Part shown: positions 56,674-62,599 of the stretch, in pieces
Position numbering within the stretch: the stretch's first letter is position 1
How the letters are laid out: each line of letters begins with the position of its first letter
IMG/VR virus record: IMGVR_UViG_3300024308_000188
Location: 62,001-126,000 of that record
Length of the DNA: 64,000 nucleotides
Direction: 5' to 3' (one strand)
Translations under genes and position numbers: made by a program
The notes under the pieces: generated by a model
Databases searched by the model: none
What the model saw: only the letters and a program-made list of their open reading frames with translations
Told to the model about the DNA's origin: nothing

Positions 56674-59556
56674 ATGGCTAAAAAGAAAAAGTTAGACATT
56701 GATGACGACGTTGTTGTAGAAGAACCAAAGAAAAAGGGTAAATCAAAAGGCAAGTCTGCTAAAGAAATTGTAGACTCTGCTATTGAAGATGCTCGCGGTT
56801 ATTCTCCAGCTGACGACATTGATGATTTGCTTGATAGTGTTGAAAAGAAATATGGCCTTTCCAGCAGTTTGGTTGACCGTGATGAAAAAAGATTATCCAC
56901 AGGGCTGTTGGCTCTTGATCTATTGCTTAACGGCGGTATTGTTGGTGGCGGTTGGTACACTATTTATGGCGGTGAGCAAAGCTGTAAATCGACATTAACA
57001 ATGACTCTTCTCTGCATGATTCAGAATGCTATTGATGAATTAAACAGAAAAATTGCTGCCAGTATTTTTGATTACGAAGGATCTACTGATATTGAATATA
57101 TTGGTAACATGATGGAAGCACTTGGATTAAAATCTGATGCTACTACAATATTCGGAATCAAAGATGACGACACTGGTTCTTGGTTGATTAAACCAAAAAT
57201 TCGTTATTACATGCCTGATGTTGGTGAAGATTTTTATCGTTACCAAGCAAAACTTCGTCGCGCACTTCCTGATGTACAAAAAATCGGTGACAAGTATTGG
57301 TATGTTTACGAACATACTCAAGAAAATAAGAAAAAGTTTGCTGGAAAATACGATGTTAAGTATTTGACTAAAACAAATAAAATTCGTATTCCTGCTCCAG
57401 ATGGCTTTATGCAAGCAGTATCAATCGTTGATAGTTATCCGGCCATGTTGCCTGAAGGCTTAGATGATGATGATCGTAATGAAGCTATGGCAGAACAAGC
57501 ACGTATGCACGCTGCTGGTATTAAAAAAGTACGAAGCGGTATGCGTAAAAAACGTATGACTGTTTTTGGTGTAAACCAATTACGTTTACGTCCTGCTGTT
57601 ATGCACGGTAATCCTGAGTATGAGCCTTCCGGGGAAGCGCTCAAATTTTTCTGTATGACTGGAGATACTTTCATTCATTCAGAGAAAGGTATGCTAACTG
57701 CCTTTGAATATTATCAAGAATGCAGCAAAGCTAAAAAGCTTCCAAAACTTCTTGGTTATCAAGGCATCGAACGTCCTACAATATTCGACACTACTGGTCG
57801 TAGTTCTATACTTGAGTTAAAAACTGAATACGGATTTTCAATAGCTGGAAAGCCAAGTCATCGAACAATGATGATTAAGTCTGGCGGCTGGAAATACGAC
57901 TGGAAGAAATTGAATCAAGTTGTAGGCGCTACAGATTATTATGTTCCAGTGAAAGTTGGCTCTGATGTTTGGGCTAAAAATCCTGCAACATTTGATTATG
58001 AGCATTATTCAAAACAGAGTAATGAGCAACAAGTAGTTAGCATTCCAAATGTTCTCACACAAGATCTTGCATTCGTTCTTGGAGCTTTATCTGGTGATGG
58101 ACACGTTACTGGTGAAAACGGTCTTGTTCAGTTTATTTCTGGTGATGTAGATTTCTTTGCTGAGTATTGTGATCGTATCTACGATGTGTTTGGAATTGAA
58201 CCTACTATTAAGACTATAGGTAACGCACAAGAGGCTCGAATTTATTCGACTGAGGTTGCGGGATTCCTTTCATATCTAGGTGCTACTGGTTATTCTCGAA
58301 GCAAAGAAGTTCCACGTTGCATTCGTATTTCACCTAAGAAATTCTTTGTTGAATTCTTACGTGGATATTTGAATGCAGATGGAAATGTTTCTTCAAAAGA
58401 AGTAAGTGCTAATAGTAATTCAAAAGCCTTACTTAATGTAATACAACAGCTTTGCTTGAATGCCGGAATTATTACAAAGCTTTCAATGAGCGAAACTAAG
58501 TATCATAAAGAGTCTAAGTTGAATGAACTGCATCGCATTAGCTTTGTTTCTTCATCAGTGAACGACTTGAACTTAATGATGTCTGAGTTCGGCGGCTTAT
58601 GTGAACGCAAACAGAAGCTGTTAGATGACACTATTACCAAAGTAAATAATGGTAATCAGTTTTATAACATTGATGTATTGCCATTTGATTTGATTAGCTA
58701 TGATTCTGTCCGTAGTGACTTTAAACTTAAGTCACATATTGAATCTGCAAAAGGCAGACGCAAACTATATCGTTTGTCTGACTTCGATTCATCTTGGGTA
58801 GATGAAGCAAATCAGATCATTGCTTCTTGTCGTACAGAACAAGAACGTAGTCGGAATAGTCGGATATTAGCTGACTTGATTGAGTTCTTGAACTATACAA
58901 CAAAAAACAATTTGCTTTGGACTAAAGTTGTCGATGTTGATCGTAACCGATCTGAAGAAATGACTTACGATGCAAACATGCCAGACACCCATACAATTAT
59001 CACTAACGGAATTGTTAGCCATAACTCCGATGTGAGGATAAAATCTACTTCTCGTGGATCTGCTCCATACGGTTTTGTTCTTGACAAAGGCATCATGGAA
59101 GAAAATTCTGTGACTGTTGAAGGCGGTAAAGATATTTATCGTTTCATCTGTTTGCGTACTGTCAAAAACAAACTCGGTGGTATTCCTAACCGTGAAGTTT
59201 GGGCGCGTGTTTGGGTTACTGATGGTGATGGTCGTGCTCGTGGATTCGATCCAGTTTTTGATACCTTCGAGTATTTAAAGCAACTTGGTTATGTTGATGG
59301 AACACGGAACAATCTAAAGTTCCATCCAGATGTTCCACTGCATGGTGCTAAAAAATTAAGCTTTGAAGATTTCAAAGTTCTTGTTCTTGGTAGTAAAAAA
59401 CAAATCACCGAAGTTTGTGAGCGAGTTGGTTTGAAGAAAGCTGGAAACATTCGTACATGGTGTTCTAAACATTGTGCAAGTGGAAAAGGCCCGAAACGCT
59501 ACAAAGATCAAATCGTCAAACGCAGTAAAGAAAAAATCGATACTGATGACGAATAA
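56674..59556 (+). CDS. recA: RecA/UvsX-like recombinase interrupted by an intein (~502 aa after splicing)
   Basis: LSTGLLALDLLLNGG, YGGEQSCKST, IVDSYPAM, AEQARM, NQLR, GEALKFF|SDVR, TVKNK. Confidence 0.9.
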   Translation: MAKKKKLDIDDDVVVEEPKKKGKSKGKSAKEIVDSAIEDARGYSPADDIDDLLDSVEKKYGLSSSLVDRDEKRLSTGLLALDLLLNGGIVGGGWYTIYGGEQSCKSTLTMTLLCMIQNAIDELNRKIAASIFDYEGSTDIEYIGNMMEALGLKSDATTIFGIKDDDTGSWLIKPKIRYYMPDVGEDFYRYQAKLRRALPDVQKIGDKYWYVYEHTQENKKKFAGKYDVKYLTKTNKIRIPAPDGFMQAVSIVDSYPAMLPEGLDDDDRNEAMAEQARMHAAGIKKVRSGMRKKRMTVFGVNQLRLRPAVMHGNPEYEPSGEALKFFCMTGDTFIHSEKGMLTAFEYYQECSKAKKLPKLLGYQGIERPTIFDTTGRSSILELKTEYGFSIAGKPSHRTMMIKSGGWKYDWKKLNQVVGATDYYVPVKVGSDVWAKNPATFDYEHYSKQSNEQQVVSIPNVLTQDLAFVLGALSGDGHVTGENGLVQFISGDVDFFAEYCDRIYDVFGIEPTIKTIGNAQEARIYSTEVAGFLSYLGATGYSRSKEVPRCIRISPKKFFVEFLRGYLNADGNVSSKEVSANSNSKALLNVIQQLCLNAGIITKLSMSETKYHKESKLNELHRISFVSSSVNDLNLMMSEFGGLCERKQKLLDDTITKVNNGNQFYNIDVLPFDLISYDSVRSDFKLKSHIESAKGRRKLYRLSDFDSSWVDEANQIIASCRTEQERSRNSRILADLIEFLNYTTKNNLLWTKVVDVDRNRSEEMTYDANMPDTHTIITNGIVSHNSDVRIKSTSRGSAPYGFVLDKGIMEENSVTVEGGKDIYRFICLRTVKNKLGGIPNREVWARVWVTDGDGRARGFDPVFDTFEYLKQLGYVDGTRNNLKFHPDVPLHGAKKLSFEDFKVLVLGSKKQITEVCERVGLKKAGNIRTWCSKHCASGKGPKRYKDQIVKRSKEKIDTDDE
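57652..59025 (+). mobile_element. Intein with LAGLIDADG homing endonuclease (458 aa)
   Basis: Starts CMTGDTFI, ends IITNGIVSHN followed by Ser; blocks LAFVLGALSGDGH and EFLRGYLNADG. Confidence 0.95.
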
Positions 59557-59608
59557 AAATAGGCGGTTAACAGCCGCCTATCCTAACAAATCGACTTGGA
59601 GATTTATT

Positions 59609-60340
59609 ATGTCCTACGAAAACACATCGTTTGCTTTTAGCAAAGCACTTGCTTTGGAAAGTGCTGATCGTGAAAATTTCTCACACGATAAACAAGTTTA
59701 TGAATTTACTTCAGATCAACTTGTTAATTATGCTGCAATAGTTGCATACAAAACCTTTCATAATGTGAAAGGTGGCGCTGAAATGGATGCAGAATCAGAT
59801 CCAATTACAGTTAATGACAAACCTGCTAAAGAAGTTTGGGCCAGTCATTACTATTCTGCACATTCTCCAGCGACACAATTTCCAAAACTTTTACCCAACT
59901 CAAATGGAACCTTTTCCTTGCAATCTGAAGGTACTCCACTTTCATTAGGTGAAGTAGTTTACAATGCTTATTGTGATGCAACAAACTGGAAGTCAGTTTA
60001 CTCTGGTGCTGATTTACCTGAATACAATCTTCAACGTCCTGAAGTTATTGCTGCGTGGGAAGCTGGTGCAATGGCACTGTTGAAAATGTTTTCAAATCTT
60101 CCTGTTCCTCCATCTACTTCTGTTGGTGGATCTGAAGGCCCAATTGGATCAGACGGTTGTTGCGGTGGCCCTCTTGGTGAAAGCGGCCCTGATGGTTACG
60201 ATCCAACAGCGGATCAAGTTGAAACAAAAGAATCTGTTGCAATTGATTCTTCTCAAGTAGGTTCTGTTGAAAACGCTTTAGGTCTTTCTTCAGAATCTGA
60301 CGAATCAGCTGGCGACGAAACTTACGCGCTGAAAGCTTAA
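59609..60340 (+). CDS. Hypothetical 243-aa protein ending in an SsrA-tag-like sequence
   Basis: ATG 59609 with GGAG SD (the tracked upstream start overlaps recA); flexible G/S/D/E tail ending AGDETYALKA*. Confidence 0.75.
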   Translation: MSYENTSFAFSKALALESADRENFSHDKQVYEFTSDQLVNYAAIVAYKTFHNVKGGAEMDAESDPITVNDKPAKEVWASHYYSAHSPATQFPKLLPNSNGTFSLQSEGTPLSLGEVVYNAYCDATNWKSVYSGADLPEYNLQRPEVIAAWEAGAMALLKMFSNLPVPPSTSVGGSEGPIGSDGCCGGPLGESGPDGYDPTADQVETKESVAIDSSQVGSVENALGLSSESDESAGDETYALKA

Positions 60341-60350
60341 GGAATTTGAA

Positions 60351-61139
60351 ATGCGTACAGAATTAATTTTAGGTACTTTAGATCCTAAGTTCGATGCTTA
60401 CCTTGATGAACACATGGCAGAGCATTCTGAAAACTTAGATCCTCGTTTGCCAAACTCTATCATTGTTACACAACACGCTGCTTCGTTTGCCGAACTTTTT
60501 AACCCGCTTTATTTATTTGGCGCTTCACGTGAATTGCTGGATGATACAGAAGATCGTTTCACTCCAATTAAGCACAGACACTTTATTCCATATATTCCTG
60601 TTGTACATGACGGAAAATTTGCTTTGTACGCACGTACACCAAAAGGAACTGAAGGTCAACTTCACGGCAAATTAAGTATTGGCTTTGGTGGCCATATTGA
60701 AATGGCTGAGTGTGCGTATTTTGGCGCTACAGTTAATGTTGATCGCCATGAATACAAAAAAGATTCTTTGGATCTTCCTTCTACTCTTGTGAGCAGTACG
60801 CTACGTGAACTTGACGAAGAGTTTGGAATAGATCAACACAACATTGTAGGTTATTCTGAAACCTTGGATCACGATACTTATATGGAGCGCACTTATGGTA
60901 CTCGTTTGCATACCATAATTACAAGTCGTGCTGTTCCAGTTGATTGTCGTCATCTTGCACTTGTTTATGTTGTTGAGGTTAAGGATGCCGATGTTCTTGA
61001 AATTGAAGAACAGTTAAACTTCCTTGGCTGGTTTACTCGTGAAGAACTTAACGAGAAATATTTTGACCAGCTTGAAATGTGGTCTAAAGCTTTAGTGGCC
61101 TGTGAAAATCTTTTGAATTTCCCTCGCCTTTTAGTTTAG
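60351..61139 (+). CDS. Nudix (MutT-family) hydrolase
   Basis: HFIPY...YAR..GTEGQLHGKLSIGFGGHIE...STLRELDEEFGI...HLALVY. Confidence 0.8.
   Translation: MRTELILGTLDPKFDAYLDEHMAEHSENLDPRLPNSIIVTQHAASFAELFNPLYLFGASRELLDDTEDRFTPIKHRHFIPYIPVVHDGKFALYARTPKGTEGQLHGKLSIGFGGHIEMAECAYFGATVNVDRHEYKKDSLDLPSTLVSSTLRELDEEFGIDQHNIVGYSETLDHDTYMERTYGTRLHTIITSRAVPVDCRHLALVYVVEVKDADVLEIEEQLNFLGWFTREELNEKYFDQLEMWSKALVACENLLNFPRLLV

Positions 61140-62524: not shown

Positions 62525-62599
<75 letters not shown>

Follow-up and report, generated by a model that had tools for sequence, protein, structure and literature searches.

Jumbo-phage proteins ending in a conserved look-alike of the SsrA (tmRNA) degradation tag

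The SsrA tag of beta/gamma-proteobacteria (AANDENYALAA in E. coli; ANDETYALAA in other species, including Salmonella Typhimurium and Neisseria meningitidis, PMC12493166) is added by trans-translation and addresses proteins to proteolysis. In E. coli, the last two Ala residues dominate recognition by ClpX, and Km rises sharply when they are mutated (PMC9035409). Terminal Ala-Ala occurs in 91% of the best 100 random degrons, whereas YALAD is non-functional, Arg is depleted and charged residues are disfavoured at the last two positions, and weak variants such as YALAS still give some ClpXP-dependent turnover (PMC10862746). The upstream portion of the tag, AANDENY, is the site read by the adaptor SspB. 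Replacing ALAA with ADAS keeps SspB binding nearly intact (KD 0.08 versus 0.33 uM; PMC8512704), and the engineered DAS and DAS+4 tags, in which the ClpX-contacting end is deliberately weakened, are degraded in an SspB-dependent manner (PMC8138137). Natural genome-encoded C-terminal ClpX degrons include MuA (RRKKAI) and cleaved RseA, which ends in VAA and is delivered with help from SspB (PMC8138137). Two further systems are relevant by architecture or by effect: the C-terminal tip of bacterial SSB, in which a disordered linker and an acidic-hydrophobic tip (DDDIPF) bind many partners, and phage inhibitors of host AAA+ proteases, such as T4 PinA against Lon.

Here we describe a jumbo-phage protein that ends in AGDETYALKA. 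Like the SsrA tag, this peptide occupies a free C-terminus after an unstructured stretch, has the same length and register with 7-8 of 10 residues identical, and, among its relatives and analogues, shows the same N/T alternation at the fifth residue that is seen between natural tags. It differs in being encoded by the phage ORF itself, without any tmRNA structure, and in lacking the tag's penultimate Ala and its Asn. DAS tags, which are man-made and experimentally validated, keep AANDENY intact, whereas the phage tips, which are natural and untested, change the Asn. Neither MuA nor cleaved RseA carries an in-register copy of the whole tag, and the SsrA-like degrons in that group end in Ala-Ala. 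The SSB tip shares the order of folded domain, long low-complexity linker, acidic run and short invariant tip, but its sequence is unrelated and the folded part of the phage protein shows no OB-fold likeness in fold searches. PinA and its like are folded inhibitor proteins and not copies of a degron; the parallel with them would hold only if the phage tip acts as a decoy.

A tag-like C-terminus on a 243-residue phage protein

We analysed a 64,000-nucleotide stretch (hereafter, the window) of the IMG/VR record IMGVR_UViG_3300024308_000188. The features discussed below are as follows, all on the plus strand.

56674-59556 (+): UvsX/RecA-like recombinase gene interrupted by an intein with a LAGLIDADG endonuclease (Pfam, PHROG); the conserved upstream neighbour of the tip gene
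59609-60340 (+): gene for the 243-aa tail-bearing protein; likely start ATG 59609, with GGAG 7 nt upstream (59598-59601), and TAA stop at 60338-60340
59624-59869 (+): mini-domain 1 (about aa 6-87), mostly helical in the predicted model, of unknown function; also found alone in many small proteins
59936-60100 (+): mini-domain 2 (about aa 110-164), a predicted two-helix unit with the motif AYxAYC..T.WKS..G..LP......AWE; widespread as a stand-alone small protein
60104-60307 (+): predicted disordered G/S/D/E/P-rich linker (aa 166-233), strongly acidic just before the tip; its length and sequence vary freely among homologs
60155-60166 (+): Gly-Cys-Cys-Gly within the linker, invariant in 4 homologs and of unknown purpose; similar Cys clusters occur in distant relatives
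60308-60337 (+): C-terminal tip AGDETYALKA, of the form A-x-D-E-N/T-Y-A-L/I-x-A
60351-61139 (+): conserved downstream neighbour (262 aa, phrog_8902, weak NUDIX likeness), starting 10 nt after the stop of the tail gene

The observation made in the sequence-only reading, that this protein ends in a flexible G/S/D/E tail followed by an SsrA-like peptide, is confirmed. A longer frame from GTG 59474 overlaps the UvsX gene, and the homolog P0003 starts at the position equivalent to ATG 59609. The product ends ...SSESDESAGDETYALKA. Its last 78 residues are S 17%, G 17%, E 10% and D 9%, and are predicted to be disordered (pLDDT 50-67). The tip matches ANDENYALAA at 7/10 and ANDETYALAA at 8/10; for a C-terminus in exact register, the chance per protein per tag is about 3e-7 and 9e-9, respectively. 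ANDETYALAA was also called or evident in about 20 of the tmRNA genes retrieved in this study (16 by ARAGORN, one by Rfam and three cut at contig ends), although we did not establish its proposed occurrence in Acinetobacter.

The tail is not a captured tmRNA fragment. Within the window ARAGORN found only a tRNA-Gly, Rfam found no tmRNA at the gathering score or, around the gene, at E<=10, and the tail is the in-frame end of a 243-codon ORF. This agrees with the earlier remark that no tRNA-like ends flank the codons. The accompanying claim that these codons are GC3-rich and resemble tmRNA tag frames was not confirmed, nor is GC3 content a sign of foreign origin: 5 of 10 codons are GC3, a value reached by 12% of all 10-codon windows of this phage, and homologs spell the same peptide with other synonymous codons and all three stop codons.

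The gene lies in a plus-strand replication/recombination block that contains a primase (DnaG-type Pfam families are on record for the equivalent gene of the related contigs), a PD-(D/E)XK nuclease, a sigma-like factor and an SSB-position gene, followed by the intein-split UvsX gene, the tail-bearing gene and the weakly NUDIX-like gene. The window is 37% GC. Based on UvsX, DNA polymerase and a tail protein, the phage belongs to the 'Lupandier' group of jumbo myophages of Proteobacteria (Phage NCTB, Dickeya AD1, Erwinia Alexandra/Yoloswag, Pseudomonas Lu11/PaBG), with only 37-60% protein identity. No host was found, the host's tmRNA tag is not known, and sequencing reads were not examined. Near-identical or related contigs are 214-329 kb and come from JGI samples and a hospital-wastewater virome.

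Similarity searches yielded little annotation. There was no DNA or tblastn hit for the gene in 50,697 phage records and no PHROG; Pfam gave only a sub-threshold low-complexity hit, and a word-index search found only 3 homologs. A profile search of 1.84 billion representatives returned 221 hits and showed that the folded part consists of two independent mini-domains, at profile positions 6-87 and 126-177. Each occurs alone in many proteins of 50-150 aa, and they occur in the opposite order in the homolog P0005. Domain 2 is fused to RyR, MazG or acyl-carrier (PP-binding) domains in other proteins. AlphaFold models are confident for both (pLDDT above 90 for domain 1 and 96-98 for domain 2), but neither has a significant PDB neighbour and the ESM Atlas gave only weak leads; BFVD was not searched. 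For domain 2 there is no Pfam hit, and Foldseek matches to RyR repeat structures were found only at E=4-10 (TM about 0.27), which does not settle whether it is RyR-like, even though some relatives carry a true RyR domain next to it. An SSB- or UvsY-like role suggested by synteny was rejected, because the gene after RecA/UvsX in Phage NCTB and Dickeya phage AD1 is unrelated.

Conservation and reuse of the tip

Conservation of the tail among homologs had been proposed at the outset as a criterion on which the idea could fail, and the motif proved to be retained. P0001-P0003 (58-97% identity), which have both domains, end in AGDETYALKA or AGDITYAIKA. More telling are P0004, P0006, P0012 and L012 (L numbers denote loci recovered in the pattern scans described below), which have domain 2 only and unrelated linkers, yet end EAGDETYAIKA, SAPDETYAIKA, CAGDETYALEA and SASDETYAIKA. 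In all, six homologs keep the tip while the linker and even the domain content change, and their UvsX neighbours are 83-92% identical to one another. P0004, P0006 and P0012 sit directly after UvsX genes that are 83-92% identical to that of a relative of the window phage; UvsX precedes every tip gene of this family whose upstream neighbour could be read (L012 was not examined). The gene therefore evolves fast while its last ten residues do not, and the synonymous differences in the tail codons, together with the changes of stop codon, show that selection acts on the peptide.

To determine whether the tip occurs on other proteins, we scanned IMG/VR with degenerate DNA patterns for the peptide followed by a stop. 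The pattern DETYA[LIVMF][KE]A-stop gave 7 loci. Three belong to the window family, and four are copies of one 403-aa protein that has no detectable similarity to it, carries a long P/K/E-rich linker and ends EPMESAGDETYALEA (final residues ESAGDETYALEA). This protein is encoded by a 48% GC phiKZ-like jumbo phage, lies in a different gene context and spells its tail with different codons; its contigs come from the same JGI samples as the window phage, 3300024308 and 3300033997. The E. coli-type pattern, DENYA[LIVMF][KE]A-stop, gave exactly one locus: gp135 of the cultured Erwinia phage vB_EamM_RAY. This 438-aa protein is unrelated to both of the others and ends DKDDEPAADENYALKA, with the tip AADENYALKA. 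It is 99% conserved in Ea35-70, Simmy50, Deimos-Minion and others. The 64-69% identical homolog of Erwinia phage AH06 has insertions and deletions in its linker but ends AADENYALKS, whereas distant homologs in Proteus, Salmonella and other Erwinia phages lack the tail altogether.

When any penultimate residue was allowed, the scan for DETYA[LIVMF]xA-stop gave 29 loci: about 20 tmRNA genes with ANDETYALAA, the 7 loci of the two phage protein families, and L023 and L036. The corresponding DENYA...xA-stop scan gave at least 120 loci, among them 115 ANDENYALAA tmRNA-type hits, 2 LNADENYALAA hits that were not examined, and 3 ORFs ending ASDENYALGA, SDDENYALRA and GDENYAIIA. A codon-shuffled control pattern gave no hit. 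In the viral collection, the peptide is therefore essentially shared by true tmRNA tags and by these phage proteins. The ORF-encoded tips examined carry K, E, C, G, R or I, but not Ala, at the penultimate position, and AH06 ends in K-S; the Ala-Ala terminus of the direct ClpX degron class is thus absent. Y-A-L/I upstream of the last two residues is invariant and sits on a tail predicted to be disordered, as expected for that class.

Other searches were largely negative. A Pseudomonas-type tip (DDNYA..[KE]A) was absent from IMG/VR. A scan of 185,579 species genomes for DETYA[LIVMF][KE]A-stop, intended to find a bacterial protein that could have served as the model for the tip, gave 3 hits, of which two are not at a stop and the third is a Verrucomicrobiales MAG protein ending IDETYALKA; no evident host model emerged. 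A metagenome scan added only weak singletons, which, like those of the genome scan, we treat as possible chance matches. A general sorting signal used by many proteins of one phage was also rejected, because only one tip-bearing ORF exists in the whole RAY genome and only one in the window.

An SspB-like adaptor in Erwinia phages RAY and AH06

The RAY genome also contains gp39, annotated as SspB-like. Pfam SspB (PF04386) scores 29.3 bits against a gathering cut-off of 27, and a profile of four phage homologs (gp39 with its AH06 and metagenomic homologs) hits the SspB crystal structures 1OU9, 1OX9 and 8ET3 at E=5e-28 to 7e-25. All four proteins have an acidic linker and end L-[TS]-[VI]-V-K (...LTVVK in RAY and ...LSIVK in AH06), resembling the ClpX-binding tail of E. 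coli SspB (LRVVK); binding was not assayed, so the resemblance alone does not decide whether these tails contact ClpX. RAY additionally encodes a Clp/HslU-type AAA+ ATPase, gp116. We found no SspB-like gene in the 64-kb window or in its retrieved flanks, and a pattern-based search of IMG/VR found such genes only in RAY and three other jumbo contigs and in none of the DETY-type contigs, although most of those genomes, including most of that of the window phage, were not read. The co-occurrence of tip and adaptor thus rests on one phage genus, the one cultured genus that carries the tip, and its adaptor is of the very family that reads the tag.

Possible readers of the tip

The interpretation offered by the sequence-only reading, a genome-encoded SsrA mimic whose LAA-to-LKA change could keep SspB/ClpA binding while resisting ClpX, is partly supported. 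Its core, a copy of the tag with the ClpX-contacting end altered, is much strengthened by the comparative data: the tip is under protein-level selection, recurs on at least three unrelated jumbo-phage proteins, and co-occurs in one phage group with an SspB-like adaptor. The assumption that the SspB-binding part is intact is doubtful. A, D, E and Y are kept in register, but the Asn is replaced by G, P, S, A or E in every phage tip, and this Asn is reported to be a key SspB contact in E. coli (Flynn 2001); the sequence thus leaves it undecided whether the SspB-binding element is retained. By E. coli rules the tip would be a poor ligand for SspB, ClpX and ClpA alike, which is the main unexplained point. 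The proposed alternatives of a decoy or a tuned degron are not distinguished by sequence, neither binding, stability nor expression was measured, and no complex of the tips with SspB was predicted.

We consider it somewhat more likely than not that the tip engages the SsrA-tag machinery in some way. Within that, we tentatively favour a portable C-terminal motif, A-x-D-E-(N/T)-Y-A-(L/I)-x-(A/S)-COOH, read through an SspB-type adaptor, either the host's or a phage-encoded one as in RAY and AH06, with direct capture by ClpX deliberately weakened. The protein would then be tethered to, or degraded by, ClpXP only when an adaptor is present, a natural counterpart of the DAS-tag/SspB system. What our data demonstrate is the motif itself, its conservation at the protein level, its modular reuse on unrelated phage proteins, its near-exclusive sharing with true tmRNA tags and its co-occurrence with a phage SspB homolog in one lineage; that SspB and ClpX are the readers, and that the outcome is conditional turnover or tethering, is inference. 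We favour this view because each genome examined tags a single protein with conserved domains of its own, because engineered precedents show that weakened tags are still delivered by SspB, and because RAY supplies an adaptor. We did not confirm that Erwinia amylovora uses ANDENYALAA. A broader proposal, that jumbo phages of several unrelated lineages evolved a natural version of the weakened-tag-plus-SspB device on one chosen protein, with some encoding the adaptor themselves, is not excluded but appears doubtful; it would let the phage re-programme host ClpXP, either for timed removal or tethering of its own protein or to block the host's tag-dependent quality control.

A non-degradable decoy that occupies SspB and/or the tag-binding sites of ClpX or ClpA, and so slows degradation of SsrA-tagged or adaptor-delivered proteins during infection, is compatible with the same comparative facts: the ClpX-critical penultimate Ala is replaced in the tips examined, sometimes by Glu, AH06 also has a terminal Ser, and carriers differ between phages, as expected if only the tail matters. 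We regard it as unlikely, because a 1:1 binder must be abundant to jam a protease, SsrA-tagged proteins are degraded by ClpXP without SspB so that titrating SspB alone would do little, the Asn is missing, each genome examined has only one tip-bearing gene, and the conserved carrier domains suggest that the carrier's own fate or location matters. A docking peptide for a partner outside the Clp system, working like the SSB tip to recruit the protein to a host hub, possibly in DNA metabolism given the fixed position next to UvsX, is a serious rival, although likewise rated as unlikely; the resemblance to the tag would then be convergent or irrelevant. In its favour are the hub-binding architecture, the position after UvsX and an SSB-like gene in the window lineage, the alteration of both E. 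coli-defined contacts, and the alternation of conserved positions (Y, L and terminal A kept, penultimate free) as in peptides that bind as an added beta-strand. However, the other two carriers are not next to recombination genes (RAY gp135 sits at 100.8 kb and RAY UvsX at 111 kb), an 8-of-10 in-register match is not expected by chance, DENY appears in the Erwinia phages and DETY elsewhere, the same two variants seen in real tags, and RAY and AH06 carry an SspB homolog.

A plain self-degron read directly by ClpXP, ClpAP, FtsH or Lon, giving a short-lived early protein, would fit the free, unstructured C-terminus, the retained YAL and terminal Ala, and the residual turnover of variants such as YALAS. 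It seems very unlikely: LAA would be one mutation away if fast turnover were wanted, yet it was not seen in the ORF-encoded tips examined, and Ala-Ala is favoured and charged residues disfavoured in E. coli degrons. Chance resemblance is excluded for practical purposes. Many stretches of DNA were presumably screened, and some single hits in our scans (L023, L139, L148, L042 and L048) may well be chance, but the tip is conserved through linker turnover and domain loss, twelve-residue near-identity occurs between unrelated proteins, and the shuffled control found nothing.

Copying of host short linear motifs is established for viruses of eukaryotes. We know of no described case, and found none in our literature searches, of phage proteins carrying a genome-encoded copy of the bacterial SsrA degron. 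The question is directly testable because one carrier (gp135) and an SspB-like adaptor (gp39) belong to cultured Erwinia phages (RAY, Ea35-70, AH06). If the motif engages SspB/ClpXP, this would show that phages tap the tmRNA quality-control pathway at the protein level; it would also give a natural test of which tag residues matter in non-model hosts, and could supply ready-made orthogonal degron/adaptor pairs for synthetic biology.

Features in and around the gene for the tail-bearing protein

Beyond the C-terminal tip itself, the window contains the following features:

56674-59556 (+), UvsX/RecA-like recombinase gene interrupted by an intein with a LAGLIDADG homing endonuclease
59559-59581 (+), perfect 8-bp hairpin
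59624-59869 (+) and 59936-60100 (+), the two mini-domains of the tail-bearing protein
60155-60166 (+), invariant Gly-Cys-Cys-Gly in the disordered linker
62525-62599 (+), tRNA-Gly(UCC) gene

The intein-containing UvsX/RecA-like product is 960 aa. The orthologue in contig L006 has no intein (502 aa), and the one in contigs L001/L002 is intermediate (743 aa). The hairpin (ATAGGCGG ... CCGCCTAT) lies between the UvsX stop and the ribosome-binding site of the tail gene; it has no T-run, so it may be a processing or attenuation site rather than a terminator. The tRNA-Gly(UCC) gene was the only RNA gene found in the window.

The two mini-domains are widespread, independent modules (221 profile hits), most of which occur as stand-alone proteins of 50-150 aa. 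Domain 2 is fused to RyR, MazG or phosphopantetheine-binding domains in some relatives, and neither domain is in Pfam.

Further C-termini resembling the tag and RNA matches in other contigs

A further unrelated phage protein of 143 aa, encoded at 2282-2776 of L098 (a 172-kb IMG/VR contig), ends ...MHASDENYALGA, which has the same A-x-DENYAL-x-A frame. Two other loci, L148 (...ISDDENYALRA) and L023 (...HAEDETYALCA), are weaker candidates. A Verrucomicrobiales MAG protein (L039, 1166-1192) ends SIAAIDETYALKA, and an open frame in a 416-kb, 61% GC metagenome contig (L046, minus strand, 1893-1919) ends SIAAGDETYAFEA; the shared SIAA prefix suggests that these two may be related.

In a 30% GC, 76-kb viral contig (L036, 2903-2929), a 30-codon frame ends KKVTDETYALAA-stop. 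Neither ARAGORN nor Rfam calls it a tmRNA, and it could be either a divergent phage tmRNA or a short ORF with a full LAA tag. Another IMG/VR contig, L028 (6072-6267 and 9056-9426), holds both a bacterial tmRNA (Rfam, 160 bits) and a strong Cripavirus IRES match (106 bits); this contig is probably chimeric or mis-binned.

SspB-like and Clp-like genes of RAY, and cysteine clusters

Erwinia phage RAY encodes an SspB homolog with an acidic linker and a ...LTVVK end (gp39, L175 39467-39919), together with a Clp/HslU-type AAA+ ATPase (gp116, L180 36352-38061). Homologs of the SspB-like gene occur in phage AH06 and in three other jumbo-phage contigs (L177-L179).

The Gly-Cys-Cys-Gly at 60155-60166 is invariant within a disordered linker that is otherwise variable. 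Cys clusters also recur near the ends of distant relatives (GCCGGC, CCGKC, CECGPCEC and ECCGGGC) and just before the tip of the L098 protein (SCECPDC). These cysteines could serve in metal binding or mark a modification site.
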